Source: Octopus bimaculoides
Lineage: Eukaryota
Direction: 5' to 3'
Assembly: GCF_001194135.2 (NCBI RefSeq)
Contig: NC_068981.1
Location: forward strand, 100,540,346-100,604,345
Length of the DNA: 64,000 nucleotides
The position numbers and the translations under genes are program-made. The notes under the pieces are model-generated. The model worked only from the letters and a program-made list of their open reading frames with translations, made no database searches and was not told the origin of the DNA. This document shows, one piece after another, positions 870 through 64,000 of the stretch (position 1 is the first letter of the stretch; the number at the start of each line of letters is the position of its first letter).

Positions 870-1700
870 CCCTGAAACAAGTGCTAATCAGAAGGAGCAA
901 AGTCTGGAGAACTTGCAGGATGAAGCAGTATTTCCCAACCAAGCTGTGTGAGGACAAGCATTATCGTGGTGGAAGATGACACCCTTTCTATTGACTAAGC
1001 AAGATCGCTTTCTGTTCAAAGCAGTTTTCAAATGATGAAGTTGATTACAGTAGAGATTAGCAGTAATTGTTTGATTGTTGTCTAACAGTTCATAATGGAC
1101 AATTCTTTCAATATCCTACCATACACTCAACATGATCCTCTTTGGATGAAGTCCTCCTCTTGGTTGTTGAACAGGTCTTCCTCCTCGACTGATCCACGAT
1201 CAATGGCATTTAACATTATGGTAAAGGATCCACTTCTCATCACCTATAACAAGCCTTCCTAAAAATGGTTCCTTATGGTGTTGTGAAAGCAATGACTGAC
1301 AACAAACAACATGCTGTTGCAGATTCTCTGGAGACAGTTCGTGCAGGACCCATTTTCCAACCACTGAAACCTTTCTGATACTCTTCAGTTGAAGGAGAAC
1401 AGTTGTATGGGCTACGTTAAACTATTTTGCAAGTTCTCTACAAGTAGTCGTTGGATTTTCTGTGAAAACAGCTTCCAACTGTTCAGAATCAAGTTGTTTT
1501 GAACAACCTTCTTTTGGCTTATCTTTCAAACTCAAATCTCCACTTCTGAAGTGACAAAACTATCTCCTGCAACTTCTTTCACTCACTACATCATCCCCAT
1601 AAACTCTCTGAAGATACTTTACTGCTGTGCTTGCATTAACACATTTATGAAACTCATAGAGTAAGACATATCTGATGTGAACTTTAGATGGGACGAACAT
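870..1700 (-). mobile_element. Decayed mariner transposase relic
   Basis: Minus-strand peptide fragments FRSGDLSLKDKP, LVIGDEKWI and KGVIFHHDNA with stops and frameshifts; TIRs not found. Confidence 0.8.
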
Positions 1701-12616: not shown

Positions 12617-13023
12617 GGCACAGGCATGGCTGTGTGGTAAGAAGCTTGCTTTCCAACCACATGGTTCTGGGTTCAGTCCCACTGTGTGGCACCTTAGGCA
12701 AATATCTTCTACTATAGCCTTGGGCCAACCAAAGCCTTGTGAGTGGTTGGTTTGGCAGACGGAAACTGAAAGAAACCCATCATATATATGTATATGTATC
12801 TGTCTGTGTTTGTCTCCTCCCCCATCACCACCATCACTTGACAACCAATGTTGGTGTGTTTACATCCCTAAAACTTGCAGTTCGGCTAAAGAAACCAAAA
12901 GAATAAGAACTGGGCTTACAAAGAATAAGTCCTGGGGTTAATTTCTTTGATTAAAACCCTTTAAGGTGGTGCTCCAGCATGGCTGCAGACAAATGACTGA
13001 AACATGTAAAAGAATAAAAGAAT
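12617..13023 (+). mobile_element. tRNA-derived SINE family A (CORE-like GGCACCTTGGGCAAG motif)
   Basis: TGGCTGTGTGGTAAG A-box-like and GGTTCAGTCCC B-box-like head; ACTGAAACATGTAAAAGA tail. Confidence 0.85.
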
Positions 13024-16044: not shown

Positions 16045-16203
16045 TATATACAGATGTGTGTGCATGTGTGTGTGTGTAGTGGACTTCGATACAGTTTCCA
16101 TCTACCAAATTTTCTCACAAGGTATTAGTTGACCCAGGACTATAGCATAAGTCACTTGTTTGAGGTACCATGCTGTGGGACTTAACCCGAAACCATGTGG
16201 TTG
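15880..16203 (-). mobile_element. SINE family A
   Basis: Reverse complement of 12617-13023 with an internal (CA)n. Confidence 0.75.
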
Positions 16204-16544: not shown

Positions 16545-17759
16545 ATAATAATAGTAATTAAAATCAGTCATTAACAAATATTGTTTTATTTTCTTAACCA
16601 CACTCTTTTGTTTTTAGTTTTGGTTTATTTTTAATGCGCCATGCATTGAATATGTTAGTGTTAACTTAACTATTATTTTTATATGGGTGCCATCTTTGAA
16701 TTCTTTAGTATAAAGTTTGGGAAGTGAACTAGATTAAAGATGATGTGTGCAAAGGTGACTCGAAACATACACTCAGTTTATGGGAAAGAATGTTTGAATA
16801 TAAGAACTTGCAGAAGATGGTTTGCAAAATTCAGAAGTGGAGATTTTAGCCTTGAAGGTGAAGATCGAACAGGACGTCCAGTTGAGTTTGATGATAAGTT
16901 CCTTGAGGCATTACTTGAAGAAAATCCTGCATTCTCAGTTGAAGAATTGGCAATAAAGCTTAGTTCAAACCATACAACTGTTCATCATCATCTTCAACAA
17001 CTTGGAAAGGTTCCTAAACTTGGAAAATGGGTGCCTCATGAATTGTCCGAAAACAACTGCAAATCCTGAGTTTACATCTACTCTTCTCTCCATTCTCGCA
17101 AACTCATTTCACCCTTTTTGGATAGACTTGTGACGAAAAATGGATCTNNNNNNNNNNTGGTAAAAGGGAAAACGCTCATCCACAACCGAGAAGGGAACTT
17201 CATGGGAAAGAGGTTCTTCTCTCTATCTGGTGGGATTGCAAAGGAGTAATTCACTTGGAATTGTTACCACCTAATGCAACAATCAATGCTCAAGTCTACT
17301 GTCAGCAATTAGAGTATTTGAATGAAGCTTTGCAGAAAAAAGACTCGCTTTAGTGAATCGAAAAGGAGTGATGTTTCATCAGGACAATGCGCAACTCCAC
17401 ACTGCAAAGATCACATCACAGAAGATCAAAGAGCTCGGTTGGGAAAAAATTCCTCATCCACCTTATTCTCCCGACCTTGCTCCTTTAGACTACCATTTGT
17501 TTCATAGTTTACAGAATCATTTGTGGGGACATAATTTTCGCAAGCCAGGAGGAGGTCGAAACTGACATTTCAGAGTTGTTTGCTTTGAAACCAAAAGAGT
17601 TTTATACATTGATGGGATTAAAAAGCTTGTAAATAGATGGAAGGAAGTCAGGGATAATCAGAGAAAGTACATTGATGATTAAATTTCAATTAAATATAAC
17701 ATTTGATTACTCATTTTCTTTATTCAAAATTCGGAGAGAACTTATAGGATGACATGATA
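16545..17759 (+). mobile_element. mariner (DD34D) element, transposase pseudogene, left TIR lost
   Basis: WFAKFRSGDFSLE, WVPHEL, DEKWI, HQDNA...HPPYSPDLAPLDY with 34 residues between the Ds. Right TIR-like end GAACTTATAGGATGACATGA-TA. Confidence 0.9.
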
Positions 17760-20880: not shown

Positions 20881-21274
20881 CTACTGACTTGATCACCTAG
20901 GTAACGGAAGCTCTGTCAACTACTTCTAGTTTTTCTCCCTGGAATGTGGCAGAAGTTGTTCTCTGCACATTTTCAGTGTTTATTGCTCCTGAGCATCTGC
21001 CACATACAAAACTATCTTCCTAGTTAGCCTTCCTTTGATATTGCTGCACCTCTTATGTGTCCATAGCTTACACTGGGTACATCTTATAGAGTTTCTACCT
21101 ACGCCTTTTCTACAGATCAAGCAGGGCCATCTACCTGAAGAGGTTTGTGTGTTTTCTACCTTCCTACTTATTAGGACTTTGGTTTTAGCTAGGTTGACTC
21201 TAAGGCCCTTCGATTCTAATCCTTGCTTCCACACCTGAAACTTCTCCTCTAGTTCTGATAGTGACTCAGCAATT
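20881..21274 (-). mobile_element. RTE LINE RT fragment (same family) including the PHD-like insert
   Basis: IAESLSELEEKFQVWKQGLESKGLRVNLAKTK...WPCLICRKGVGRNSIRCTQCKLWTHKRC, nearly identical to 53520-53800. Confidence 0.9.
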
Positions 21275-28225: not shown

Positions 28226-29443
28226 CTACAATGTTAAATATAGCAATTTATATGAATGAAAAAGAAAATGCAGAGTATCAAGCTAACAGAAAAAAGAAGC
28301 AACTTCGGAGGACCATTAATGATGTTAGCTGTGTTCCCATGCAAATGGACAACACTTATTGGGTAAAAAATTGATGTATCTCCATTTGGTGAGATACTTG
28401 TAGCAGAGAAAAGCTTAGAAAATGTAATGAAGAGGATAAAGTCTCAGGATATTGAGCTTCATTGAATGACACAGGGGCAGCATTCTTTACTACACACTAT
28501 CTAATCTGTGCCAGCTTGAGAAAATGCATGTTAAACAACAGAGATGATAGTTTGTTACATCTTCATTAGTTTCTGTACAGCACTAGACACATTAGCTGTT
28601 CAAATACTGCTGTAATTATAACTCTGTTCATTGGTTAAAAAAAAATCATCTAAGATTTTGGTTGAAATTATTGATCATCAAATTATATTTCATTGTCTAC
28701 ATACACAAAATGTACTGAATTAAGAATATACTTCTAAATTAGCAGATTGGCATTAGCATATTTTCTTATCATATTTCCCAGCATAGAAGTCTAATTTTTC
28801 AGACCACAATTTATAGCCAAAAAAGGTAGTTCACCTTATATACCAAGACAATTTTGGATGACCAAAATTTCTTTGTGAAATGCAGCCAGATTTAGAAAGA
28901 CAATGATGATGTTTGAATCCTTACACTACATCGTCGTCGTCATCATCATCATCATCATTGTCATCATTTAGTATCTGCTTTCTATGCTGGCATGAGTTAG
29001 ACAGATTGACTGGAGCTGGAAAGCTCCACAGAGTTCCAGTATGGTTTGGTTTGACTTCTACAGCTGGATGCCCTTCCTAATGCCAACCATTCCAAGAGTG
29101 TAATGGATGCTTTTTACATTCTACCAGTACATTTACATTGCTACATTGCTTTGTATACTTTAAAATATGGTAATTCATTTCTGATTAATGATTATCCTTG
29201 ATTTATCTGAAACAAGAGTTACTCTTTTGTCATTGTCTTCATTTTGTCCAAATGTTATGTTGTTTTCTTTTTTTACTACTATGTTTAATCTACTTGAGTG
29301 TTTTTTTAACTGTAAATCTGGTTCTAACTTTATATAAATCTTAAAATGGTTTCAAATACCCTTCAAAAATCACCTGATTTAAGTGACATTTAAAGTTATT
29401 TTATGAGTGTAATTATGTTTAAAATGATATCATGTTATTTCAG

Positions 29444-29567
29444 AAAAGGCAATACTGAAGCATGCATCAATTATTTAAAATTTGCTGTTGACACGGCTGA
29501 AAAAAGTGGTCAACAAAAAGCTTACAGTAATGCTTGTCACCATTTGGGTTGTATATACAACTCTTTG
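29444..29567 (+). CDS. TTC29: TTC29-like exon 7 (KGNTEACINYLKFAVDTAEKSGQQKAYSNACHHLGCIYNSL)
   Basis: TATTTCAG acceptor at 29443, TTG|GTAAGC donor at 29568, phase 2-0. TPR signature A..LG.IY. Confidence 0.93.
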
Positions 29568-29698
29568 GTAAGCTATATTTCATTATATAATCTACTTAAT
29601 GACGTTTGCATGTATTTCTGATTTCTGTGTACATCTGTCTTTATGCATAAATTATAACTGAAGATTCTCTAATAATAATAATGTACAATAACAGTGAC

Positions 29699-30033: not shown

Positions 30034-31746
30034 TTATGATAACTGACAGGTCTGTTGGTCATGTCACAAGTTATTTTGTTATAGCTTTACATTGTATACT
30101 TCTTATACTAATTACCTAAGATAGATATTTTCTTTTGCTTCTCCTGTTTAACCACTTACTTCATTAGCAATAGCTNNNNNNNNNNCTTTACCCTTATGAT
30201 AACTGACAGGTCTGTTGGTCATGTCACAAGTTATTATTTTGTTATAGCTTTACATTGTATACTTCTTATACTAATTACCAAAGATAGGTATTTTCTTTTG
30301 CTTCTCCTGTTTAACCACTTACTTCATTAGCAATAGCTATGGTATATTGTGACAACAATAAGTATTTATATATACTTTATGATAGTTATTTCCAAAAAAA
30401 TAATCCATCCATTCTAACATAGAAAAAAGAAATATTAAGCATTTAAATAAACTTTATTGTCTTATATCAGTTAACACTTAAATGCTATATTATCAATATT
30501 AGGTTGGGCTTTAAGGCGATGAGCTGGTAGAATTGCTAGCAGGCTTAACAGCATTTCATTCATCTTTACATTCTAAGTTCAAATGCAGTTGAGTACTGGA
30601 GTCAATGTAATCGACTTATCCTCTCCCCCCAAATCACTGGCCTTGTGCCAAAATCTGAAACCAATATAATGTTGGGTTTTACTGTGTAGTCTACTGACAG
30701 CAACATACCAAGCTAAATACATGACCATGCTTTATTTCTCAGTGTTTTTAATTTCAAATCTTTCAGTGTTACATTTTTTTCTTTCATTCTTCCAAAATTG
30801 ACAAAATAAATACTATGCATATATTAGATTGATTAAATAAATTCCTGTAAAATAATGTTTTCTGATTTCGGCACACAGCCAGCAGTTTTGTGGGGAGGCG
30901 AAGGGAGAAGTCTGTACCATCAACCCCAACACTTTTTATTTTATTGACCCCAGTGGGATGAAAGGTAAATTTGACGTCAGTGGGATTTGAACTCAGAACA
31001 TAAACAGTCAGAATGGTATTTTATCTAGCACTTTAACAATTCTACTAATCCACTACCCTAAAGTCCTGCAAAATAACAGGCACAGTTCAATTGACTACAC
31101 ACTTCCCCTACAAATTCATGGCTTTGTACCCATGGGAGAAATCTGTACTTAGTATTTGTAAGGGGTAAGTATCATGGCTTGATTTCCATTCTTTGCTAAA
31201 AATCTTTCATTCTACATACTTCAAAAGGATTTTATATATATATTATATATCAGGCTTTGTTATGATTGTGTAGAATGTCATTAATAGGTATGTGAAAAGT
31301 GTAGGTGTATTGTGGAGTTGAATTAGCTTACTTTGTTGAGCATTGAATAGTCAGTGTTCATGAACAATACTCACTACATTACTTCTGACAAATTGTAATT
31401 TTGTTTGTTCACATACTTAGACGAGATGTGAGAAAATCAATGAGTAGTTTTCTCAACAAAGCCATCTATTTACATACACGGGTAATAGATGTTGGATAAT
31501 ATCCATAGTCTCAGTTGATCACTCTTGGGAATCCAACCAGAAAAACCTAATGATAGTTGCTTCTAATAGGACCCTATGGAGGAGGTGCCTGAGGACCTTC
31601 CCAGGAATGGTTTGGTGAAGATTGATGGAGATGGTAGATGATGAGTGCTTAGTACTTACAACAATTTTTTCAACAACTTATAAGTTTTGTCCATTCTCAT
31701 ACATTAACTGGATAATATGATTTGATTGATTTTTTTTCCTTTTCAG

Positions 31747-32022
31747 TGTATGCATTCTCATGCTGTTGAGTACTTCAACAAGGCATACAACATATCTCGA
31801 GCTTTGAATGACACTTCATCCTTAAATGCTAACCGTGTGCATTTTGGTATCTCATTGGCTCATAAGATGAATGAAGCATATATATGCCACTTATATGCTC
31901 CACTATTGAAACCTGATAATTCTTTGCTCAAATGGAAATGTTTTAGAACAGAAGAGTTTGCTGTTGAAGAGTTTAGCAAAACAGCTCTATTTGGAAATGG
32001 AAGCACTGATGGACCCAACTAA
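31747..32022 (+). CDS. TTC29: TTC29-like last coding exon 8 (CMHSHAVEYFNKAY...RVHFGISLAHKM...LLKWK...GPN*)
   Basis: TTTTCAG acceptor at 31746, stop TAA at 32020-32022. Matches TTC29 KVHYGIAKAHQM and LLSWK. The eight exons sum to 1380 nt = 459 aa + stop. Confidence 0.93.
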   Translation, partial: CMHSHAVEYFNKAYNISRALNDTSSLNANRVHFGISLAHKMNEAYICHLYAPLLKPDNSLLKWKCFRTEEFAVEEFSKTALFGNGSTDGPN

Positions 32023-32948: not shown

Positions 32949-33503
32949 CAGGCTTCTTTATTTTTTTGGCGGACTCTGTATGTATAATGGGCTTCTTTGA
33001 GTTTCTATCTACCAAATCCACTTACAAGGCTAGGTTCTACACAGTGGGGCTGAACTTAGAACCACGTGGTTGGGAAGCAAACTTCTTACCACACTGCCAC
33101 ACCTGCACCTATATATCTATGAGAAATAAAAACTTTTTTATATCATGCTGCCCATACCTACACTTATTCACTGAATCAGCTTTATATCTTTCTCTCACCT
33201 CCAGTACTTGTACTTTCCTCATCTTATACTAAATAACTCACTCTATCGTTCTTCTGTATATTTCTCTTACACACAAAATATGAATATTCTTCATCTAATA
33301 ATTTATTTGTGAAAATTTAAGCTAAACATTATCCATTCTAACCTCACTAAGTTATCCTTACACAACCTCTAAAGAAGCCTACATAGAATAATAGCTATGA
33401 CACTTTTCCCCCCTCTGTGTGTGAAAATGAGAAACTAATCAGTCTCACTCCAGATATCTTAAACATTTGTTTATACTTCTTACAATATTTTACTTCTTCA
33501 CAG

Positions 33504-37426: not shown

Positions 37427-37840
37427 GGAGTGGCTGTGTGGTAAGTTGTTTGCTTACCAACCACATGGTTCCGGGTTCATTCCCACTGCGTGGCACCTTG
37501 GGTAAGTGTCTTCTACTATAGCCTCGGGCCGACCAAAGCCTTGTGAGTGGATTTGGTAGACGGAAACTGAAAGAAGCCGGTCGTATATATGTATATATAT
37601 ATATGTATATGTGTGTATATGTTTGTGTGTCTGTGTTTGTCCCCCCAACATCACTTGACAACTGATGGTGGTGTGTTTAGGTCCCCTTAACTTAGCGGTT
37701 CGGCAAAAGAGACCGATAGAATAAGTACTAGGCATCCAAAGAATAAGTCCTGGGGTCGATTTGCTCAACTAAAGGCAGTGCTCCAGCATGGCCGCTGTCA
37801 AATGACTGAAACAAGTAAAAGAGTAAATAGTAAGAGTAAA
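37427..37840 (+). mobile_element. SINE family A, full length, CpG-rich
   Basis: Same head, core and tail; tail AAGTAAAAGAGTAA repeats. Confidence 0.88.
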
Positions 37841-43150: not shown

Positions 43151-44548
43151 CATCCCCGTCCACTCCTCTCTCTCTCTCTTTCTCTCTTTCTTCCTCCCTC
43201 TCTCATTTATTGTTCTTTCAGTTAGTAGCAACTGTTGACCTTGATAAAGATTGACATTGAAAGTATTTATGCAATAGCTTTTAACAAATTTGTTTTGAAA
43301 ATATAAGACATCATCCACTTTAATTCGTTATTGATACTCAAATTACTTCATAATGTTTCTTATTTCTTTAGCCAAGTTATGATTGAAGTATTAAAGAACA
43401 GAAAACAGTTCACTAATTATTAGATGGGACATACATTTTAAGATAAAAACAAGATTCGTTGTTAATATTCAACAGTATAAAGAGATGAGAGTTAAAAACC
43501 CAGTGTTCAATGCAGTCACACAACCTGCTAGAAATAACAGCTAAGTTTTTCTCCAATCACACCCTGTTGAGGAAACGTTGGATAATGGGACAAAATTTCA
43601 AATTAGTGGCTTCATACTTTTATTTATTTATTTATTTATTGGTGTTTCTTACGAAAATTACAATTTTGAAAAAGATTTTTGTCTAAAAGAATAAAAGTTT
43701 CAGGTTTTTACATTTTTGCACCTCACCCTCCCTGCCTTCCATAACCATTTCCTCTCCTATGAAGAAAAACACTACTTCTAATATAGCCGAAGATGTACCC
43801 TTAAAAAGACAAGATGGTCAAGGTTGGAATGCCTTTGGTCATTGGTCTGCTCAGTCAGGGCCAACTTGGCCCAAAATTACATGAGGAGTATTGACTAACA
43901 GAGGAATATTGGTTTCTTGAGTATATACATACACACACACACATGATGGGCTTCTTTCAGTTTCCACCTTTCACATCCATTCAAAGCCTAAGGTGACACA
44001 GTGCTATAGTGGAAGACACTTGCCCAAGGTACCATGCAGTGGGAAATCTGAAAGCATGTGGGTGAGAAGCAAGCTTCTTACCACACACCCAAGCCTATAC
44101 TTATATAAAACTTACTTTGCAGTGTGAAAGACACATTAGCCATTCAAAAACACATGAAGACTGTTAACTTCCTTTAAACATTTAGTATTTGTTATATGGT
44201 TTCAAAATGTTCATCACTTGAAACTGTGACCCAGTCAACAGTCTTTGTGTAATTTGAATGGCTAACGTGTCTTCCACATTGCAATTGGTCCCAGATCAAA
44301 TCACTTGCCTGCTACTTACTTTATTAATACCAAAGGGATAGAAGGCAAAGCTGATTCTAGTAGGATTCAAACATATAACAAGGTATAGCAAACTCCTAAC
44401 AGTAGAACAGTTCAACTAACCATTTCATGTGCCTTATCAGATTTGGTAAAATTAGTTGTTTTGACTGATACTTGTTGCACAAACTGGGTAGGGTTTGGAG
44501 TATACCATTTAACAAAAATAAATAAATACACTCCTTTTATCTCTACAC

Positions 44549-48575: not shown

Positions 48576-49762
48576 CAGGGGTTCGACAAAATAATGGAAA
48601 CACCTTAAAATTTCAAACAAATTTATTTTAATATGGGGTAGGACCACCTTTGGCAGTAATTACAGCTTGAATTCTACGAGGTATGGACTCGTACAAAGTT
48701 TGAATTGTTTCCAAAGGAATTTTTGTCCATTCTTCAACTAAAACAGTCTCCAGTTCTTGTAGTGATGATGGTGGAGGATATCGACTCCTTACTTGTTTTT
48801 CTAAAATACACCATAAATGTTCAATAATATTGAGATTTGGAGACTGTGGTGGCCAGATAAGATGTTCAACTTCACTAGAANNNNNNNNNNNNNNNNNNNN
48901 NNNNNNNNNNNNNNNNNNNNNNNNNNNNNNNNNNNNNNNNNNNNNNNNNNNNNNNNNNNNNNNNNNNNNNNNNNNNNNNNNNNNNNNNNNNNNNNNNNNN
49001 NNNNNNNNNNNNNNNNNNNNNNNNNNNNNNNNNNNNNNNNNNNNNNNNNNNNNNNNNNNNNNNNNNNNNNNNNNNNNNNNNNNNNNNNNNNNNNNNNNNN
49101 NNNNNNNNNNNNNNNNNNNNNNNNNNNNNNNNNNNNNNNNNNNNNNNNNNNNNNNNNNNNNNNNNNNNNNNNNNNNNNNNNNNNNNNNNNNNNNNNNNNN
49201 NNNNNNNNNNNNNNNNNNNNNNNNNNNNNNNNNNNNNNNNNNNNNNNNNNNNNNNNNNNNNNNNNNNNNNNNNNNNNNNNNNNNNNNNNNNNNNNNNNNN
49301 NNNNNNNNNNNNNNNNNNNNNNNNNNNNNNNNNNNNNNNNNNNNNNNNNNNNNNNNNNNNNNNNNNNNNNNNNNNNNNNNNNNNNNNNNNNNNNNNNNNN
49401 NNNNNNNNNNNNNNNNNNNNNNNNNNNNNNNNNNNNNNNNNNNNNNNNNNNNNNNNNNNNNNNNNNNNNNNNNNNNNNNNNNNNNNNNNNNNNNNNNNNN
49501 NNNNNNNNNNNNNNNNNNNNNNNNNNNNNNNNNNNNNNNNNNNNNNNNNTGACCTCTTTGAAAGTCTGATAGATCTGTCATTTTAATGAATTTTAATTAC
49601 CTTTTTCTGATGATATCTGAAAAGAAACAGCAATTTTAGCAAAACATATTAAGTAACACTAATAATAAATCAAAAAACATAAAAATAAACAAGCTTTTGA
49701 TGGTTTTATAGATATTTCAAAATTATGATGCTAGGTATTTCCATTATTTTGTCCAACCCCTG
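48576..49762 (-). mobile_element. Tc1-family transposon (transposase 49581-48628, mostly in an N gap)
   Basis: TA TSD; 29-bp TIRs CAGGGGTTCGACAAAATAATGGAAACACC (2 mismatches). MTDLSDFQRG start and WPPQSPNLNIIEHLW...GGPTPY end. Confidence 0.92.
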
Positions 49763-49770
49763 TATATATG

Positions 49771-51044
49771 CAGGGTGCGTAAGATATTTGAGGACAGATT
49801 TATGTTTATAAAAAAACAAATATATAGTAACAGATAATAACTTAATTTATCAAAGAATGCTATGAGGATAAAAATAAACCTTTTTTTCTATAATGTTATT
49901 TAATAAAACCACCTTCAGCTTCAAAAACTGCTTCTATATGAGATTAAATCATCTACATGCTCGAATCAAGTGGTCCTGGTTCATTTTGGACATTACTCTG
50001 ACTATGGCAGCTTTCATAGAATCTTTAGTGTTACGGCTGTGTTCATTTATCTCTCTCTCTCAACAACGCTCCACATGTAATAGTCCAATGGATTGAGATC
50101 TGGGGAATTAGGAGGCTAAATGTTAGGGGTTATATGATCATGAAAATTTTCAGCCATCCTTTCCTGTGTTACTAGAACCATGTGTAATAGTACAGAGTCT
50201 TACTGAAACACATATGGCCTTCCATTGCATACTCTGTCTATCCAGAACTTAACAATTATTTCCAGGACCTCAATGTAGGCAGCAGAGTTAACTCTAAGGC
50301 CTTGTGAAAAGAAGTAAGGAGGCATCACATGTCCTTCATTGCTGACAATCCTTAAAATCATGACAGTTGCAGGAAATCTTGTATGCATAACACTTGGAAC
50401 TTCCAAAGGGTCTACACATAACCATCTGTCATTTCTTCTGTTAACTTTTTGATCTTGGTCAAAGTTTTTCTCTCGTTTGAGAAAAACCAAATCAAATCTT
50501 CTGCTGGATTTTTCAGTTTGTGTAAGAGCCTTTTAGATCCGATGTAGTGATTTTCTTTTGCTTTTTTGGACAAATTGACCTTTCCTCATCATATAAGACT
50601 TATATCTGATGTCTTCATGGACAACATTTCTGACTGTTCCTTCTGACACATGGAGATCTTTTGCAATTGACCTCATGGACTTTTTTGGATTGTAATCAAT
50701 GGTCTGTTGAACTTGCTGGATAAATTCATGTGTTCTGATGATTTCAGGGCATTTAGAATGCCTTTTATGCTTTGATACTGGTGATACATTTCCATCTTCA
50801 GTCTCTAGCTCCTTACAAACTTTGTAGACAAAAGATCTGGCAACTTTTAAAACTCAAGATATTTCTAAATCACTATGCTCAGCCTTTATAACCACAATAA
50901 CAGCATACCTCTTTGTTTCTTGAGTAAGCTGAGTATCATTCTTGAGTACCATTATTATTTTCTGAAACAAAGATTATACAGAGTTAGCAAAAAATGCAGC
51001 AATGATCCAAAAAAGGTATATCCTCAAATACCTAACGCACCCTG
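49771..51044 (-). mobile_element. maT-family (DD37D) transposon, transposase pseudogene
   Basis: 24-bp TIRs CAGGGTGCGTAAGATATTTGAGGA (2 mismatches). EKNF, GHVMPP, YVFQ*DS...PPNSPDLNPLDYY with 37 residues between the Ds; internal stops. Confidence 0.88.
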
Positions 51045-52469: not shown

Positions 52470-54960
52470 CCTTATGACAAAATGGAGGGGGATGTAGCTT
52501 CACACAATGTATAGGACAACTGGATGTTTCTACGGGACAACCTGCTGAGGGCCACCGACCAGATCTGTGGATGGTGCAAGGTCCCCTCTCGACCTAAAAT
52601 AACATGGTGGTGGAACAATGTTGTTGACAGGGCTATTAGACAAAAGAAACAGGCTTGGAAAGACGGGAAGAAGGATGGTAGCAGGGAATTGTATCAGACT
52701 GCCAGAAGGGAAGCTTGGCGACAGGTTTATTTAGCCAGAGGGGAGGCAGATAAGAAAAAGTTTGCCAATGTTCAGCGCCATGAGGACCAAAGACTTGAGG
52801 TATTTCGTGTTGCAAGACAGTGTGTGAGAGAGAATCGTGATGTCGTGGGAGAGAAATGTGTTCGCATGGATGATGGTACGCTTGCACTAAACGAGGCTGC
52901 AAAGAAAGAGGTTTGGAGACGCCACTATGAAAGATTGCTCAATAAAGAGAATGAATGGGAGAGAGAGAGAGTCTGCCGAATGTCGACCCAACAGAGGGAC
53001 CAGCTATCCGAGTTGAAAGTACCATGGTAGATAAAGCAATTAAGAGTATGAAGACAGGGAAGGCCCCCGGCCCATCTGGAATCACTGCAGAGATGCTCAA
53101 AATATCTGGCAGTGTCGGCTATAGCCTAGTCACCCGTATTGTTAACCAGGCGATACACAAAGGAGTCATACCCAATGACTGGTGTAGCAACACCATAGTC
53201 AACTGCTACAAAGGTAAAGGTGACGCTTTAGATNNNNNNNNNNNNNNNNNNNNNNNNNNNNNNNNNNNNNNNNNNNNNNNNNNNNNNNNNNNNNNNNNNN
53301 NNNNNNNNNNNNNNNNNNNNNNNNNNNNNNNNNNNNNNNNNNNNNNNNNNNNNNNNNNNNNNNNNNNNNNNNNNNNNNNNNNNNNNNNNNNNNNNNNNNN
53401 NNNNNNNNNNNNNNNNNNNNNNNNNNNNNNNNNNNATTTATCATAGTCCTCCAGGCTATAACAGAGGAATTCAAGACAGGATGCCCCTGGGAGCTCCTCT
53501 ATGCTGACGACGTTGCACTAATTGCTGAGTCACTATCAGAACTAGAGGAGAAGTTTCAGGTGTGGAAGCAAGGACTAGAATCGAAGGGCCTTAGAGTGAA
53601 CCTAGCTAAAACCAAAGTCCTAATAAGTAGGAAGGTAGACAAAACACAAACCCCCTTCAGGTAGATGGCCCTGCTCGATCTGTAGAAAAGGCGTGGGTAG
53701 GAAGTTTATAAGATGTACCCAGTGCAAGCTATGGACACATAAGAGGTGCAGCAATATCAAAGGAAAGTTAACTAGGAAGTTAGTTTTCATTTACAGCAGA
53801 TGTTCAGGAGCTATAAATACTGTAAATGTGCAGAAAACAACATCTACTACATTCCAGGGAGTAAATCTAGAAGTGGTTGATAACTTCTGCTATCTTGGTG
53901 ACCAAGTTAGTAAGTGGGGAGGGTGTGCTGAATGTGTAGCTGCTAGAATAAGAATAGCTTGGGCAAAGTTCAGAGAGCTCTTACCTCTGCTGGTGACAAA
54001 GGGCCTCTCACTCAGAGTAAAAGGCAGACTCTATGACGCATGTGTACGAACTGTCATGCTTCATGGCAGTGAAACATGGGCTGTAACTGCTGAGGACATG
54101 CGTAAGCTCGCAAGGAATGAAGCCAGTATGCTCTGATGGATGTGTAATGTCAGTGTGCATGCTAGACAGAGTGTAAGTACCTTGAGAGAAAAGTTGAACC
54201 TAAGAAGCATCAGCTGTGGTGTGCAAGAGAGACGTTTGCGCTGGTATGGGCATGTGGCGAGAATGGATGAGGATAGCTGTGTGAAAAAGTGCCACACCCT
54301 AGCAGTTGAGGGAACCTGTGGAAGAGGTAGGCCCAGGAAGACCTGGGATGAGGTGGTGAGGCACGATCTTCGAACATTGGGCCTCACCGAGGCAATNNNN
54401 NNNNNNNNNNNNNNNNNNNNNNNNNNNNNNNNNNNNNNNNNNNNNNNNNNNNNNNNNNNNNNNNNNNNNNNNNNNNNNNNNNNNNNNNNNNNNNNNNNNN
54501 NNNNNNNNNNNNNNNNNNNNNNNNNNNNNNNNNNNNNNNNNNNNNNNNNNNNNNNNNNNNNNNNNNNNNNNNNNNNNNNNNNNNNNNNNNNNNNNNNNNN
54601 NNNCCTATTGAAGCAAGCGAAAGCAAAATCGTGATGGCACCGGTGCCCTGGCACGTGTAAGGACATTCGAGCGAGATCGTTGCCAGTGCCGCTGGACTGG
54701 CTCCCGTGCAGGTGGCATGTAAAAGACACCATTTTGAGCGTGGCCGTTGCCAGTACCGCCTGACTGGCCTTCATGCCGGTGGCACGTAAAAGTATCCACT
54801 ACACTCTCGGAGTGGTTGGCGTTAGGAAGGGCATCCAGCTGTAGAAACTCTGCCAAATCAGATTGGAGCCTGGTGTAACCATCTGGTTCACCAGTCCTCA
54901 TTCAAATCGTCCAACCCATGCTAGCATGGAAAGCGGACGTTAAACGATGATGATGATGAT
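52470..54960 (+). mobile_element. 5'-truncated RTE-clade LINE: disrupted RT ORF with PHD-like insert, 3'UTR and (GAT)n tail
   Basis: TWWWN, KTGKAPGPSGITAEMLK, LLYADDVAL, LRVNLAKTK, FCYLG, RGRPRKTW motifs; frameshifts near 52960 and 53655, TGA at 54134; tail GATGATGAT at 54946-54960; two gaps. Confidence 0.92.
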
Positions 54961-55278: not shown

Positions 55279-56577
55279 CTATCAAGAGAAGATATGGATA
55301 TAATCTTTAAAACCTGTCAGATCTAAGAGAAGTGTTAAGAACAGAATCAAATCCTCTACATAATCTTTAAAAACCTCTTCATGCCCTTCAGCAGTGTCTC
55401 CTATGATTTTCTTCAGAAGATCCTTGATATTTTTTGATATTCTGCTAAGTTCATCATGATCCTAAGACTTCTTCATAGCAACATGGTTGCTGCTGTTCTG
55501 GTCTGTCATAGAGTCAAACAGAGTTGTTGCATTATCCCAGTGTTTTTGTTTCACTATATTTATCACAGCCATCTTCAGAACTTCAGCAACTTTGGTGACA
55601 TGGAGAGTCATCCCTTGGTCATTGTTAACAATGATTGAAAACCCCAACATCATTTGAAATATGCAAGAACTGCTTTTAGGCACCTTTGGACATGGACTTT
55701 TCACAACCAAGACATTCAGATTGCTATGAAGTCCTTGTATTCTCAAAGTCTTCCTGTGTAAAATAGTTGTTATCCCCATCTACCATTGACATCTGACTTT
55801 ATTGAGGGACTTTCACAAGCACTATCTTCATAGCATTCTCATGATCATCTAGGAAAGCTTTTGAACCAATATTAACATCTTTCAAAGAGGAAATACTACC
55901 AGTACTGAAGCAGCTAGCATTAAGAACTGCTTTCAGTAGGCAGGACACATTCTTCAAAGGGAGAACAACTGCTTCCGCTAGAAAATTTGTAGCTAGCTGA
56001 GGGAATATAAATGAACAAGGCAAAAACAGCTGAACAACATCTTGAATGCAACATTCAAAAGCTGTAGCATGAACATGAACAACTGAAAAGTTCTGGTTCA
56101 TGATGGGGCAGCCTAAAGTTTCTTCATTCATCAAAGAGTAGACTGCTATGTATGATCTCATCAAAAAGATTGTTGGGGCAAGAGGGAGACAAATAAAATC
56201 AAAACTCACTACCAAAACCCATTCAGCCTTCTGTACTTATCTATTCTCACTGTCAGAAGATCCATACCATTAGGATAGGACTTACTCACTTGCACACACA
56301 TCAATAATCTCTGACCTAGAAAACCATCTCTTGAATTACCAAGAGTTAACCAATATATCTTCATGAAGGGGATAATTTTCGATGCTGGCAAACTTACAAA
56401 GAGATATAAGGCTAATTATGAGTTGTTCTACATATGATATTTCTGCCAGTTAACAAAAGTACTTGGCTTGACTTTCTAGTATGAATTTCCTTGACTCTTT
56501 TCATGACAATAGGGAATAATTTGATGGAGATTTGTTTGCTAGTTCTAACAGGTCAAGTTCTTTCTTTATTGGTTCCC
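55279..56577 (-). pseudogene. Unidentified decayed coding-like relic
   Basis: Back-to-back 138-aa and 105-aa ORFs, further in-frame extensions across single stops, a TTTTTTTCAG acceptor-like start and a G|GTAAAA donor-like end. No family recognised. Confidence 0.3.
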
Positions 56578-57349
56578 CTGAAAAAAATAGTTGTACGAGA
56601 AAAGCAATTTATTAAAGCTGAGGGACTTAAAGTCACAACAAAAGAAAGTCAATGTCTTTCACATCTATTCTACCTTAAATGAAGCTCTGACCTACTTCTT
56701 GTATAATAGATGTGTCTTTTCATAACATATCTGTGGCAGCATAAGGCATATGGTTATGCAATTATCAAATTGTTACACACTCATGCAACTGGTACTTAAT
56801 TTATTGACTCTGAAAGGATGAAAGGCAAAGTGACCTCAGCAGAATTTGAACTCAGAACATAAAGACAGACAAAATACCACTGAGCATTTTTCCCAGCATG
56901 CTAACGTTTCTGCCAGCTTGCCACCTTCCACATATATAATATTAATTATAGTTTGGGCTTTGGCAGTCATGGACACAGCAGAGGACTTGATCAGATGCAT
57001 TGGCATATTTAATTTTGTTTTTTGAGTTATAAGTTCAAATCCCATCAGGGTTGGCTTTATCTTTCATCCTGTGGGGATGAATAAAATATATAATAATTAT
57101 ACTTTCTTCTATCATGTTACACTCAGTGTTGCACTTTAAAAAGTTTGTTGTTTTTAAAACTTCTGTGCCTTTTATTTATTTATTTATTTTTGCATATACT
57201 AAAAAATTATTTTTCTTTTATTTTTGGCTGAAATATCTTAAACCTTCAAGAAGAATCAACTTTCAAACGCTAAAATTATATATTAGAAAACAATAACTGG
57301 GACTTCAGCATTTATTATACCCATTACTCTGTAAATCAAAGAATTTTCA

Positions 57350-57432
57350 ATGGGTGACGAATTCTTTGGGCCCTACCTCTCTGAACGCCAGTGGGGGACT
57401 GTCCGTGAAGACTACTCATTTTCTGGAGACTG
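57350..57432 (+). CDS. YMR196W-like / GH63-related glycoside hydrolase, first recognisable coding exon ([27 protein letters not shown])
   Basis: Contains the family motif [17 protein letters not shown]. Donor TG|GTTAGT at 57433 (phase 2). An in-frame TAA at 57332 lies upstream of the ATG; a weak acceptor at 57341 could instead add an upstream coding exon. Confidence 0.85.
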
Positions 57433-57440
57433 GTTAGTAT

Positions 57441-57820
57441 CTTTTATCTTTTACTTGTTTCAGTTATTAGACTGTGGCCATGTTGGGGCACCACCTTGAA
57501 GAATTTTTAGTTGAATGAATTGACCTCTGTACTTGTTCTTTTTTAAGCCTGTTACTTATTCTATCAGTCTGTTTTGGCAAACTGTTAAGTTACTGGGATG
57601 TAAACACGCCAACACTGGTTGTCAAGCAGTGCTGGGGGGACAAACACAGGCACATACACTCACACATGTATATAACAGGCTTCTTTCAGTTTCCATTTAC
57701 CAAATCCACTTACAAGGCTTTGGTCAGCTTGAGGCTTAGTAGAAGACATTCGCCCAAGGTGTCATGTAGTGGGACTGAACCTGGAACCATGTGGTTAGGA
57801 AGCAAACTTCTTACCACACA
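57441..57820 (-). mobile_element. SINE family A starting 8 nt after the hydrolase exon donor
   Basis: Reverse-complement copy. Partial copies also at about 10880-11000, 32947-33110, 43943-44090 and 61605-61945. Confidence 0.82.
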
Positions 57821-58859
57821 ATTCTTATCAGCTTGAAATAGAAGTATGTGTTCAGTTATTTTATAATGAACTGTCCTAAGTCTGTTTAAAAGCTTCATAA
57901 ATCAATTTTCCATTAATGCTTCATTAATAATGGGCTAACCTTAATTCTGTTGAGAATCTTCAGATTAATTTTTCATAATTAAATCTTACTTCAAGAAAAT
58001 AATTTTTGAATCTTATTTTCTTTATTTGTAAAATGACATTGCTACTTAGGTTATTACTAGACCACTGGGCAGCAACTGTTGATCCCATGTTCCATAAGTA
58101 AAATTAACAGACAAATAGGACCACTTTTATATGACTATTGAGAACACCCTCATCATTATGAGATTATTGCAATACAATCTCATATGGTCAATCACTACAG
58201 TTAGTACACAGTTATACAGAGACTAAGGTCTTGATATAATTAAAGAAAATAAGTGTAAAGTCCTTTCAGTTCAGTGATATAAATCATTTTACTGTCCATG
58301 GCTGAAGCTTTGGATAGCCAGTCAAGCAACTGCTCACTTATTGGTCAAGTGAGCTTCAAATTTCTGACCCAAATACCTCACAGGTTAAAATGGGTAATAG
58401 CACTGAATCAGTCCTGTATACTGAGGTTCATTTTGGTTTAAAAGCAATAAGGTTAAAAGAGCTGAAACCTGCAATAGGATTGGGATTTGAACAAAACTAA
58501 TGGTAGTATAGCATAGTACATATGCAACAAGTGATAAAACAGGTTTATAAAATGGGGGTTTATAAAATCTATGGCTAAGAGAAAAATCTAAGTTCAATAG
58601 TGAGAGAGAGTGTTTAAATTAAACTGTGCTGAATTTGAAACCGGTTGTATAGCCACTAGTTAGCTTTGAATGAGCAGATCTATGATCAAAGGTGTTCTAG
58701 CTATGACTATCCCATCTTTTTTATACAGCAAGGACTACATTATCCACTGTATCCCTTATTGGGCTGCAGTTTGCCCATGACTGTCATAGAGATTCTCTTG
58801 TATCATCAAGCTAATCAAAAAAAAAGATGTCCATGTATAAAGGTGCAATTTGAATATGA

Positions 58860-58900
<41 letters not shown>

Positions 58901-58994
58901 CGAAAAATTGAGATTCAGATGAAATAGGTACCAAAATTGAGGCACCAAAAATTAGTGCGGTATTATCTGTACAATTTCAAAATAAGGCAAATAA

Positions 58995-60391
58995 AATCAA
59001 AATAAGCAACAGGATATCCAGAGGTGATGCAGTACGACCGTTTCAAGTGGCTCCATTTAATTGAACAATGCAATCATTACATCAGTTTAAATGCAGAGCT
59101 ATCCTCAGCTGCATAAATAAATAAATAGAATTAATTTAATCAGTCGGACACAGTTGTATAATTTTACTTAAATCCTCCAAGAGAGTAAGAAAACAGACAA
59201 AGTCCATGCTGTTTTCACTTCAGCTTAGAAGCTACTAAGACATCAAGACAAAAAAGAAACTTGTTTGGGTTCTAGCTTGTCACTGATTTTTGGGTGGTTT
59301 TGATTTATAGTCTTGTTTATCAAATCTTTATATTATATCAAAATCTAAGACTATAGGAAAGGGCATGAGGAAGTTGACAGAATCATAGTGGATATAGTCA
59401 TAAAACTTGTCAAAGTTTATTTTGAAGTAGTATAATGTAACTAGCTATAATGAGGTTTGGTAAAGGAAGATCTTAAATCAAGATGTTAATTATCACTTAA
59501 AGGGGCAAGACTCTAATAAAACCAATGATGATAATACAGGGGAAATTTTTTATCATGGGGGGACTATAGTTGAATGATTTAAACAATATCGTTATATTAT
59601 ATAAAGATAAAATTTAGGGTTATCAAGAAAAAATATTAAGAAAATATTATAACCAAAAAGATACATTTTTGAATAATTTTGAGTAATTTACAAAAATAGA
59701 GAGAGAGAAAAAAATTACATAGAATTAGTTTAATATTTTTTCATATACTTAAATATTTACTTATTAGGTGGTATCTGTGAAGATTGATCACTGGCATTTA
59801 ATAAAGGAATACTGGGGCGATAGAACATGCTAACTATATAATAAATATAATCTAAGAGGTATATTATAAGTTGTGAAGTTACATGTGCTGTTATATATAA
59901 GCTGATATAAATTTCTAGAGATACAAAAATTAGGTTTACTTACATAAAGGCTATTATAAATATGGGTCAGTAGGGTAGAACACCACAGAAAGAAAGAAAT
60001 AGTTTAATAACTAAAAACCATGATGAAGTGTATATACCTTATTATCATCAATAGAAAAGAGATTATTATATAGAATTTCATTAATAATTCAAACATTTAA
60101 ACTAAATTATTTATTTATTAGGTGGTATCTATAAAGACTGATACCTGGTATTTACTAGAGGAATATTGAGGCTATAAAACATACTAATTTTGTCTGTCTT
60201 CTTACCCTCTTAAAGGATTTAAGTAAAATTATACAAATGTGTCCCACTGGTTAAATCAATTCTATTTATTTATGCAGCTGAGGATAGCTCTGCATTTAAA
60301 TTGATGTAATGATTACATTGTTCAATTAAATAGAGTCACTTGAAACGGTCATACTGCATCACCTCTGGATATCCTGTTGCTTATTTTGATT
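58995..60391. mobile_element. Element bounded by about 205-bp inverted repeats (MULE/fold-back-like)
   Basis: Arms at 58995-59201 and 60188-60391 differ by about 13 substitutions and one 4-nt indel. Internal direct repeat at about 59710-59835 / 60060-60190. No ORF or TSD found. Confidence 0.75.
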
Positions 60392-60392
60392 G

Positions 60393-60439
<47 letters not shown>

Positions 60440-60518
60440 CATATATGTATANNNNNNNNNNNNNNNNNNNNNNNNNNNNNNNNNNNNNNNNNNNNNNNNN
60501 NNNNNNNNNNNNNNNNNN

Positions 60519-60581
<63 letters not shown>

Positions 60582-60907
60582 TACATACTTACACACAAAC
60601 AAAAATACTCTGTTGATGTTGAAATTCCAATGAAGGAGTCTTGAATCTAGGTTAGAAACCGGCTCTTCCTCTATTAGCAAGAAATCTTGAAATAAAACTG
60701 AACAATGACATACATACATACATATGTGTATATGCATATTTATGCATGTGTGTGTGTGTGTATGTAGCAGTTCTTGAAAATATTTAACTTCAATTATCTT
60801 TAAAGAAAAGGAGATTGTGAAAAGCATTTAAAACATGAAAAGTGTTAACATGTTTAATTATTTTTCTTTTTCATTTCTTTTCATCTTCCTCTATATAATT
60901 TCAACAG

Positions 60908-61076
60908 TTGGAAATATTGTACACATCATGACTCTCTCAACACAGTTTACCTTCATGGAGAAGATGGCTTGTTTGGCTGGTCTGATTATAAAGCCAAATT
61001 ATGTGCATCTGTAGCATTATGGAATGGAAAAGATACTATACTTAAAGAGAGGTTATTTGGGCTTACTGGGCCTCAG
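60908..61076 (+). CDS. YMR196W-like / GH63-related glycoside hydrolase, next exon (WKYCTHHDSLNTVYLHGEDGLFGWSD...ALWNGKDTILKERLFGLTGPQ)
   Basis: Long pyrimidine tract and CAACAG acceptor at 60907, CAG|GTAATT donor at 61077. TG|T joins the previous exon in frame (GDCW). Motifs GEDG and LWNGKD.ILKERLFGLTG are characteristic of the family as I recall it. Confidence 0.9.
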
Positions 61077-62716
61077 GTAATTCATTTGAAGTATTTTTAA
61101 TCTCTGTTCTTTGACAAGTTTATGTTTGAAACAATTATTTATGCAGTAAATGGCGGTGCCCCAGCATGGCCACAGCTCATGAGCTGAAACTAGATAAAAT
61201 GATAAAATGAAATGAGTACTAAAATGTACAATATTTCAATACTTTCCCTTGTAAACATTTTTAGTGGCATGTTTGTTTATATACTTTTTACACGCTGAAT
61301 GTCATTAACTGTTTGACATGATTGTGAGTTTGTTTTTTTTTTACACCTGAGTGCACTCCCTATTCTCAATCACTCATGCATGAACTAAGAAAAATACTTG
61401 TTATTTGTCAAGATTACATAATTGTACCAAATTTTGCTCATTGAATTTATTGTGTTCATTGTATCTTTCCCTGTTTATCTTGCTGAAAATGTATTGCTGA
61501 ATGTTTAATGGTAAGAATAGCATTCATCCAATTGTTAATATTCTCACTCAACAATTCACAATTAAGTATCTGAATTTGCAAAAGAGATATATATGGACCC
61601 GAGCCTGGCCATATGGTTAAAAACTTTGCTTTGCGATCATAACAGGTTCTAGGTTCAAGTTCAGTACACCACACCTTTAGCCAAATGTTTTCTACTATAC
61701 CCTTTTTGGTTAACTATGATTGAAATGTTAGTGACAAGAACTGTGTAAAAGCATGTTTGTTGTTTGGTTAAGAACTTTGCTTCTTAACCACATAGTTTCA
61801 GGTTCAATCCCAGTACATGGCACCTTGGGCAAGTGTCTTCTATTATTGCCCTGGGTCAATCAAAACTTTGTGAGTGGATTTGCTTGATGGAAACTGAAAG
61901 AAGCTTATTGTACATATGTGTATATATATACGTGTGTGTGTGTATCTTGTTCGTCTTGATGTCACATGATTGTTATACAAGGATGTTATTCATTTACGAT
62001 ATTCTGTGAAAACATGTCTGGCCACAGGGAAATATTACCTTGCTTGGAAACAGGTAAGGGTTGGCGACAGGAAGGGCATCTAGTCATGGAAAAGTGGATG
62101 TTACCGAGAAATTTATAGAGAGCAAAAAAAAAGCTTCTTCTAAAAAAAAAAAAGCTTCTTCACTATAGAAACCATGCCACAACAGACAGTTGAGTAAGAT
62201 TTGATTACTTCTTCTAGTAGGTCTAAAAACCATTTAGAAGCTCCCCCATGTTGTTTTAGAAGTAGTAACTGCAGGAGCAGCAATGAAATGAAGTCTGTGA
62301 ACTGGAATCTTTCAGATGGCTCACAAAATGGAGTGAATAGTTTCTTTTTCTTGTAAATAAGCACAGTAGTTCATGTAAGTTTATAACATGTTTATTCTTA
62401 TATAATATACATACATACATATANNNNNNNNNNNNNNNNNNNNNNNNNNNNNNNNNNNNNNNNNNNNNNNNNNNNNNNNNNNNNNNNNNNNNNNNNNNNN
62501 NNNNNNNNNNNNNNNNNNNNNNNNNNNNNNNAAATTCAAATTACAACAAAAGTAAATAAACAAACGCAAATAAACAAATGAAGTTTGCTTTTCGAAGCGT
62601 TGAGATGTCTTTTAGAAAGTTAAAGAAGTGATTTTAAATTCTCAATCGCAGAATAATGCTAATAATATAGCCTGAACAGGATAAACTACCCCTATTTTGC
62701 AGAGAAAACTGTAGGT

Positions 62717-62790
62717 GGCTAGCTGTGGACACGAACTCACATCCCCATGATTACATGTCACGATGCTTTGATCGATTAAGCTAAACTACC
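62717..62790 (-). pseudogene. Degenerate tRNA-like gene, anticodon TGT (Thr-like)
   Basis: Minus strand: GGTAGTT/AGCTAGC acceptor (6/7), GCTT/AAGC D-stem, CGTGA/TCATG anticodon stem with loop CATGTAA (A33), GAGTTCG T-loop, TTTT just downstream. Confidence 0.5.
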
Positions 62791-64000
62791 CACTACAAAT
62801 TCCTCTGCAAATTAAGATATATAAATCTCGCTTTATGAGATGCTCTCATATGTTAAATTCAAATTACGACAAACGTAAATAAACAAACGAAGTTTGCTTT
62901 TAGAAGCGTTGAGATGTCTTTTAGAAAGTTAAAGAAGTGATTTTAATATATATATATATAGTTGGAAGTCAAGAAGAGTTCAGATTTTGAAAAGTTCATA
63001 ATAGTTCAGGTGCAGATAGGTACTTTCCAGGATATGAAATCCATAGTGTTGCTGAGATATAGTTTGGTGTGTAAATCAGTGGTGTCAGAGGTGAAAACCT
63101 TGGAATTGATAGAAAAGTCATGTGCAGCTAGTCGTTTAAGGCTGTTTCTAGAATAGTTGTGCAGTTGGTTTAGATCTTTGCATGTTGTCCACACTAAGTT
63201 CAGGAAGTATATGGTGTAAAGTATGTGTGGCTACATGGTAATGGGACATAGGACATAGACTCATTTCTCTCTCACCTCTGTAGAACAGAAGCTAGAGTGA
63301 AATGAGTTGAGAACAATTTTTTGGATATGTTGCATTGACTTGCATGAAAGGAATGGTAATATATTGTGTGACAGACGTTGCAAACCCATACCTTAGAATG
63401 ACAAACAGATGTTAAAACAAAGACAATAAGGGTTTCTTACAAAACAATAACGAAATCAAAATTGGGTTGCAGTTTGCTCACTATTTAGGTTGCATTTTTA
63501 ATAAATTGCCTACAAATATCCATTTCAAAAACGAAAAAAAAGAAATTTGAAATTTAAATAAAATGATTCTTCACATGAAAAAAAAAAGATAAGTAAATTT
63601 TCATCTTAAAATTAAAACAAAGTAGTTTCTTGTTAATCGTTTGTTTATATTGTCTTTTCAGTTAATTATCATTATGATACTGACTCCAATGATAATATGC
63701 TTTGCACTTAATATTTTTATTTCATTGTTTCATTTTTTTCAACGTGTACATAATATTTAACTTCCTTGTTAAAACTAAATTCCAGTATATTTTCTCCATT
63801 AATCATTGCCATAAGGTATCATGCAATTTTACAGCATGTAGATCAGTGGTTCTCAACCAGGGTCCATACAAGATTTTGTTGTTAAAATTAATATGCAATG
63901 TGGTGAGAAGAGGTGAGAAAAGGTTTACAAACTTTGAGATTCACAGAGGGGATGACAGGGAACTGACACTCCTGGCAGTTTGCTGTGCTTGAAAAGACAC

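Follow-up and report, generated by a model that had tools for sequence, protein, structure and literature searches.

The 5' coding end of a probable, vertically inherited YMR196W-like glycoside hydrolase gene in Octopus bimaculoides, with an unusually divergent N-terminal segment

Here we describe two exons near the downstream end of a 64,000-nucleotide (nt) stretch of the Octopus bimaculoides genome (NCBI RefSeq assembly GCF_001194135.2, contig NC_068981.1, positions 100,540,346 to 100,604,345 of the forward strand; the whole stretch is hereafter called the window). With a probability that we put at roughly 85%, they are the 5' coding end of the host's own vertically inherited YMR196W-like gene, encoding an MGH1-like glycoside hydrolase with the fold of glycoside hydrolase family 63 (GH63). 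The YMR196W-like family is strongly conserved, animal and bacterial members being ~60% identical over ~900 residues, yet in no organism has a substrate or physiological role been assigned to it. The gene appears to lack annotation in this genome, which gives the result some annotation value. As the 5' end of a gene whose family is already annotated in invertebrates the finding is of modest novelty, and what is new is the unusual divergence of this copy.

An earlier note on this DNA, made from its letters and a list of open reading frames (ORFs), had joined two exons in phase over a GT-AG intron into an 84-residue peptide, and had named a HMMER-type search of that peptide and a phylogeny with bacterial, fungal and metazoan homologues as checks. 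Direct reading of the sequence gave the identical translation. The exons (Table 1) sum to 83 + 169 = 252 nt, or 84 codons, which are free of stops and frameshifts, and all three splice sites are canonical. The exon junction splits a cysteine codon in phase 2 (GAC TG/gttagt...aacag/T TGG), with a long pyrimidine tract preceding the exon-2 acceptor. Neither exon is in the ORF list, just as had been remarked; exon 2 sits in an 80-codon stop-to-stop frame that the list omits.

The assembly gap within intron 1 is flanked by (TA)n and (CA)n tracts and lies ~390 nt upstream of the exon-2 acceptor. Because this position is intronic, the coding frame is unaffected, and only the length of the intron and the scaffold join depend on the gap. 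Support for the join comes from the exons being co-oriented and correctly ordered, and from a junction at which no residue is missing or extra relative to homologues (gap-free hhalign alignment over residues 6-84). When 12 bacterial and 21 animal full-length proteins were used as tblastn queries against both strands of the window, exons 1 and 2 were the only matches that could be read as exons of the family. Exon 1 matched bacterial and animal homologues at 86-95% identity over 57365-57430, and exon 2 matched at 52-61% identity with E values down to 2e-17. Weak tblastn matches at 43.8 kb and 22.1 kb were rejected, being translations of a repeat resembling a short interspersed nuclear element (SINE) and containing stops.

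The N-terminal segment encoded by the two exons belongs to the YMR196W-like family. A HMMER search of the 84-residue peptide against 5.8 billion sequences returned 1581 matches, the best at E 5e-29 and the best matches 60-69% identical, with source names such as 'glucosidase' and 'MGH1-like glycoside hydrolase domain-containing protein'. Bacterial loci turned up by the hundreds, at 58-70% identity, in scans of prokaryote genomes and metagenomes. Compared with a profile of 58 family sequences, the peptide scored an hhalign probability of 99.94% (E 5e-37). The signature of the family spans a 17-residue block, GEDG and LWNGKDxILKERLFGLTG, and is present in the window peptide, which agrees with the consensus at 17/17 positions of the exon-1 block, 4/4 of GEDG and 20/21 of ALWNGKDTILKERLFGLTGPQ. 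Judged by this N-terminal segment, the gene as a whole would be of the YMR196W-type, GH63-related, six-hairpin kind; this was the assignment made in the earlier note, and it is borne out by the HMMER and hhalign results as well as by the domains and fold of the relatives described below.

Searches of Pfam, NCBIfam and PDB sequences with the 84 residues alone returned nothing meaningful, in the case of Pfam because the library models of the family cover its C-terminal domains only, and the PDB sequence search detected no counterpart of the N-terminal segment in GH63 structures. These empty results, together with the absence of the exons from the ORF list, are what speaks for chance open frames that merely resemble the family. 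We assign this explanation a negligible probability, since it is refuted by both the HMMER and the profile E values.

The remainder of the protein can be pictured from its full-length relatives. Complete bacterial ORFs at the matched loci encode 874-944 residues, and the matched segment begins ~20-25 residues from their N-terminus. These ~900-residue glucosidase or MGH1-like proteins, from Planctomycetota, Acidobacteriota, Bacteroidota, Streptomyces, cyanobacteria and others, carry the same blocks as the window peptide at 58-70% identity over the 84 residues; their genes are intron-free, and at the invariant basic positions substituted in the window copy they have the canonical residues. The C-terminal two thirds of one full-length bacterial homologue contain PF22422 (MGH1-like_GH) and PF03200 (the C-terminal domain of GH63), the PF03200 match having E 7e-10 in the relative tested. 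A phmmer search of a full-length relative against PDB gave marginal matches (E 6e-4 to 3e-3) to Thermus TTHA0978, a mannosylglycerate hydrolase, and to yeast glucosidase I. The C-terminal (alpha/alpha)6 catalytic domain is present in bacterial and animal homologues, and in the window gene would lie past the window's end.

An AlphaFold2 model of the Ciona orthologue (mean predicted local distance difference test score (pLDDT) 79.6, predicted template modelling score 0.86) places an N-terminal helix before a predicted beta-sandwich at ~60-325 and a helical barrel at 335-885. Its best structural matches in PDB are the GH63 glucosidase I enzymes of Chaetomium (7T6W), yeast (Cwh41, 4J5T) and mouse (5MHF), which share the two-domain fold with template modelling (TM) scores of 0.51-0.63, followed by Escherichia coli YgjK (3W7S) at TM 0.35-0.43; sequence identity between the solved GH63 structures and the Ciona orthologue is just 11-13%. 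Set against this architecture, the 84 residues from the window cover the conserved N-terminal segment and reach into the beta-sandwich as far as its first strands, with the active site excluded. Residues 21-60 of the Ciona model, the counterpart of the window peptide, have a pLDDT of only 54-64 despite a near-invariant sequence. Low AlphaFold confidence on an N-terminal segment conserved throughout the family is unusual, and would be compatible with a conformation that is set by a partner, a ligand or oligomerisation.

GH63 enzymes are inverting alpha-glycosidases that use two carboxylates in an (alpha/alpha)6 barrel, and their substrates include the Glc-alpha-1,2-Glc unit of N-glycan precursors (glucosidase I) and small alpha-glucosides (YgjK). 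Members of GH63 also act on glucosylglycerate and mannosylglycerate (PMC6608630), examples being the Thermus mannosylglycerate hydrolase (4WVA) and a mycobacterial glucosylglycerate hydrolase (PMC6608630). Full-length YMR196W-like relatives, of ~900 residues, lack a signal peptide and comprise a short N-terminal helix, the conserved N-terminal segment, the beta-sandwich and the (alpha/alpha)6 barrel; by analogy with GH63, the barrel would use two carboxylates to hydrolyse, with inversion, an alpha-glucosidic or mannosidic linkage in a small sugar or glycoside. The most likely activity of the family, going by homology, would be to hydrolyse a small alpha-glucoside or a compatible solute in the cytosol. 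For the window gene, an enzymatic mechanism, a cytosolic location and a present-day function are inferred.

The family takes its name from Saccharomyces cerevisiae YMR196W through the NCBI naming of the animal orthologues, a link that rests on database names. That its function is largely uncharacterised, as had been stated earlier, holds for the yeast protein too: a 2024 preprint still calls YMR196W uncharacterised and ties it to iron and mitochondrial metabolism through omics profiles, not enzymology (bioRxiv 10.1101/2024.02.29.582718).

Orthologues are found in a range of invertebrate animals. The protein matches of the peptide included an orthologue from Halocaridina rubra, whose gene has at least 16 exons. 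At JAXCGZ010009464.1 10001-23488 the deposited annotation divides this single gene among three models (105, 467 and 161 residues). Animal orthologues were gathered with the stitched Halocaridina protein as query, and many of the full-length ones bear the NCBI name 'uncharacterized protein YMR196W-like'. They come from crustaceans (the decapods Macrobrachium, Panulirus, Portunus, Penaeus, Homarus, Petrolisthes and Cherax, a stomatopod and a barnacle), a tardigrade, the echinoderms Asterias, Amphiura, Antedon and Anneissia, hemichordates, amphioxus, four tunicates including Ciona, and Trichoplax. The 120 matches listed were mostly bacterial at ~60% identity and contained no vertebrate, insect or nematode, in a search that did not test absence exhaustively; all of the named animals among them are invertebrates, in agreement with the patchy occurrence proposed in the earlier note. 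A coral orthologue is discussed in PMC10584924. Literature searches on YMR196W-like proteins, and on horizontal transfer of GH63 genes in relation to metazoa, turned up nothing relevant. With the family annotated in many animal phyla and mentioned in print (PMC10584924), the novelty of an animal member had been overstated, and the octopus locus adds little on distribution.

The positions of the introns show how the window gene was inherited. We mapped the exon junctions exactly in six other animal genes, those of Trichoplax, Ciona, Branchiostoma, Asterias, Hypsibius and Halocaridina. Intron 1 is found in all six and in the window (7/7), in phase 2 inside the Cys codon of G-x-C/W. Intron 2 occurs in two forms and is absent from Trichoplax: in the deuterostomes Ciona, Asterias and Branchiostoma it is in phase 1 within a Gly codon, 8 nt upstream of its position in the protostomes Hypsibius and Halocaridina, where it is in phase 0 after G-[PS]-Q. 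The intron 2 position of the window copy is of the protostome type, as befits a host that these comparisons mark as most likely a protostome.

Protein comparisons point the same way. In a quick neighbour-joining tree of 58 full-length sequences, built without support values, all 21 named animals form one cluster, and the topology within it tracks taxonomy, with groups of crustaceans, of tunicates, and of echinoderms with hemichordates. Where columns discriminate animals from bacteria, the window peptide has the animal residues C28, S62, T71 and Q84 (summed log-odds +27 bits). The animal genes of Ciona intestinalis, Homarus americanus, Portunus trituberculatus, Pollicipes pollicipes and Anneissia japonica, like the homologues in Trichoplax, Branchiostoma, Asterias, Hypsibius and Halocaridina, share with it both the N-terminal blocks and Cys28, a position at which most of the broader bacterial sample has Ala. 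The shared introns, the animal cluster and the animal-type residues together place the gene, intron 1 included, in the common ancestor of Placozoa and Bilateria, where it was already split.

The peptide is no closer to animal proteins (59-70% identity) than to bacterial ones (58-70%), and the family is widespread in bacteria, so one has to consider that the gene was recently acquired from a bacterium by horizontal transfer, or that bacterial DNA contaminates the assembly. However, the earlier note had already recognised a spliced gene in an animal genome, and indeed intron 1 is a 3.5-kb GT-AG intron that carries a SINE-like repeat of the host and microsatellites, while the 35.6% G+C content and the surrounding transposon remnants are also those of the host. 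Both introns have positions and phases common to other animals, and the residues at discriminating columns are of the animal type. Contamination and recent transfer are refuted by the intron evidence, and we regard either as very improbable: the window gene is a vertically inherited animal gene. Between the two origins that had been put forward for the patchy occurrence in animals, an old transfer or differential loss of an ancestral enzyme, the shared introns and the single animal cluster favour loss, since introns shared from Placozoa to Bilateria mean that the patchiness reflects loss and not repeated transfer. A transfer predating the animals lies outside the scope of these data, and the ~60% identity between animal and bacterial members keeps that question alive.

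The window copy differs strongly from its orthologues. The other animal proteins are nearly identical to one another in the N-terminal segment, whereas the window peptide is only 59-70% identical to them. We compared the peptide column by column with 22 animal and 88 bacterial-type sequences over positions 6-84. The consensus residue is retained at 46/58 columns with a conservation of 90% or more and at 5/21 of the variable columns (Fisher p = 1e-5), and the substitutions within conserved columns fall in tight clusters (runs test p < 5e-6). The peptide keeps a 21-residue block and LWNGKD-ILKERLFGLTGPQ. Its substitutions replace NWKRW by GDEFF and A-R-S-R-A-Y-R-W by S-L-N-T-V-Y-L-H (with loss of R38, R40, R43 and W44), together with D35H, R55Y, R58K and F61A, so that exon-2 residues 35-44 and 55-61 deviate from invariant columns. 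The D-R-x-x-R motif of the family reads DYKAK, with both of its invariant Arg residues replaced. All 22 animals examined, shrimp included, keep the canonical residues at NWKRW, RSRAYRW, R55 and R58. The replacement of YRWGEDG by YLHGEDG, which the earlier note had singled out, is real and part of a wider loss of invariant Arg and Trp residues. A compensated frameshift at residues 35-44 was rejected, because by eye neither of the other two frames encodes a canonical RSRAYRW peptide, which makes the changes in this stretch real substitutions.

The N-terminus is also unusual. It had been described as short and without a signal peptide, and on direct reading it contains no hydrophobic stretch and begins 15-40 residues later than that of every homologue examined. 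The ATG lies 6 residues before GPYL, while the amphipathic helix AExxRLxE of the homologues sits 10-20 residues before it. Because an in-frame TAA closes the exon-1 frame just upstream, any longer N-terminus needs an upstream exon. The stretch from this stop to the conserved block contains a single AG, at 57340-57341, whose pyrimidine tract looks weak; an upstream exon spliced there could restore a longer N-terminus, though not NWKRW. No upstream N-terminal exon was found by tblastn within the window.

How, then, should the present state of the gene be read? The likeliest reading, which we think rather probable, is that it is still under constraint, or was until recently, with an N-terminal segment that has changed in role. 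Among the residues identical to those of Ciona, Asterias or Hypsibius, 57-67% use different codons, which argues that the conserved blocks were held by purifying selection over most of the history of the lineage.

A number of observations count against our view of the locus. Nine positions at which 58 full-length members show no variation have changed (N16, W17, R19, W20, R54, R57, W58, R69 and R72 in Ciona numbering), and the N-terminal helix AExxRLxE of every homologue is missing from the window copy, with a TAA 15 nt upstream of its ATG. The window holds only 84 of ~900 codons; the catalytic domain with its acids would lie beyond it, as would the stop codon. Exon 3, which should begin GNHGEDVKE, was not found in 61077-64000, either by tblastn or in the three-frame translation read directly; that downstream exons would lie outside the window had been anticipated. 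Finally, no protein more than 70% identical was found in a collection of 5.8 billion clusters (transcriptome-derived assemblies included), in metagenomes or in prokaryote genomes, which leaves the gene with no independent sign of expression or of conservation in a sister species.

Much of this would also suit a relic: a pseudogene or duplicated 5' fragment that no longer functions in this lineage and is losing its invariant residues. Besides the nine invariant columns, seven further columns conserved at 90% or more are changed, and the changes taken together include five consecutive ones (NWKRW to GDEFF). The N-terminus is truncated behind an in-frame stop, no matching protein or transcript-derived sequence was found in the collections searched, tblastn found no exon 3 in the 2.9 kb downstream, and the locus is embedded in transposon-rich DNA. 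However, the 84 codons contain no stop or frameshift, the splice sites are all canonical with a strong pyrimidine tract, and one block of 17 and another of 21 residues have stayed nearly unchanged, whereas uniform neutral decay would not give changes as clustered as the runs and Fisher tests find them to be. Long introns being usual at this locus, one expects exon 3 to lie past the window's end. We therefore consider a relic a possible but less probable state of the gene, and a recent inactivation is likewise possible.

At the other end of the range, the protein may have been remodelled, losing the Arg/Lys/Trp cluster and the N-terminal helix while the neighbouring blocks stayed strictly constrained. 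This more specific proposal we hold to be unlikely. If true, it would imply that the N-terminal segment has acquired a different ligand, partner or oligomeric interface, the protein being either a neofunctionalised orthologue or a paralogue specific to the lineage, and would provide a natural variant from which to learn the role of this unusually conserved segment. More generally, the window copy is a natural variant of the family; if it is expressed and intact, its replaced basic and aromatic residues become candidates for functional dissection.

Table 1. Features of the window, with positions counted from its first letter
Feature	Position	Strand	Remarks
In-frame TAA stop	57332..57334	+	direct reading; 15 nt upstream of ATG
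Coding exon 1	57350..57432 (83 nt)	+	ATG at 57350; 27 residues plus TG of the Cys28 codon; donor GTTAGT
Intron 1	57433..60907 (3475 nt as assembled)	+	phase 2; SINE-like repeat 57678-57820, microsatellites, gap 60452-60518
Coding exon 2	60908..61076 (169 nt)	+	last base of the Cys28 codon, then WKYCTHHDSLNTVYLHGEDGLFGWSDYKAKLCASVALWNGKDTILKERLFGLTGPQ; acceptor ttcaacAG, donor GTAATT
Start of intron 2	61077..64000	+	phase 0, after ...LTGPQ; SINE-like repeat 61761-61904 (minus strand); gap 62424-62531
SINE-like repeat of ~150 bp, seven copies	12622-12783, 16127-16203, 33060-33094, 37431-37578, 43936-44100, 57678-57820, 61761-61904		74-86% identity
Mos1-type mariner transposase remnants	16728-17562 (+), 891-1421 (-)	+, -	HTH_48 E 5.5e-11; DDE-region motifs split over frames and gaps
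Retrotransposon of the long interspersed nuclear element (LINE) type	52524-54634 (+), 20980-21250 (-)	+, -	RVT_1, then a PHD/C1-like zinc finger; two assembly gaps and frame changes
Tc1/IS630-like transposase fragment	48631-48879	-	C-terminal DDE part adjoining gap 48881-49549
Second Tc1/IS630-like element	50203-50853	-	weak HTH_Tnp_Tc3_2 matches
Two adjacent open frames, 124 and 101 residues	9581-10258	+	motif CGDLKVISLLLGLQLGYTK; no Pfam match
Two open frames, 105 and 145 residues stop to stop	55465-56236	-	1.1-1.9 kb upstream of exon 1; no Pfam match
Two helical open frames resembling tetratricopeptide repeats (TPR-like)	29394-29618, 31726-32019	+	might be exons of a neighbouring host gene

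The surroundings of the gene are rich in repeats: the window contains 13 assembly gaps and abundant microsatellites. The SINE-like repeat, which presumably resembles an abundant Octopus SINE, often adjoins microsatellites, and each of the two introns holds one copy of it. Rfam and ARAGORN scans of the window found no RNA genes, and nothing tRNA-like in this repeat. The reverse transcriptase of the LINE is 68% identical to its best full-length relatives, and one 209-residue fragment is 80% identical over 57% of the query; its best named relatives, from Hydractinia, Branchiostoma and Mercenaria, are 43-53% identical.

Three further sets of open frames were noted. The pair at 9581-10258 may be part of an unclassified transposon-derived protein present in many animal genomes. 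At the first of the TPR-like frames, an upstream tandem copy of the YMR196W-like gene was considered and rejected, as its match to GtaA_6_Hairpin is below threshold (E 0.006) and hhalign shows no relation to the family. Lastly, the two frames shortly upstream of exon 1, on the opposite strand to it, are unusually long for DNA of 35% G+C.

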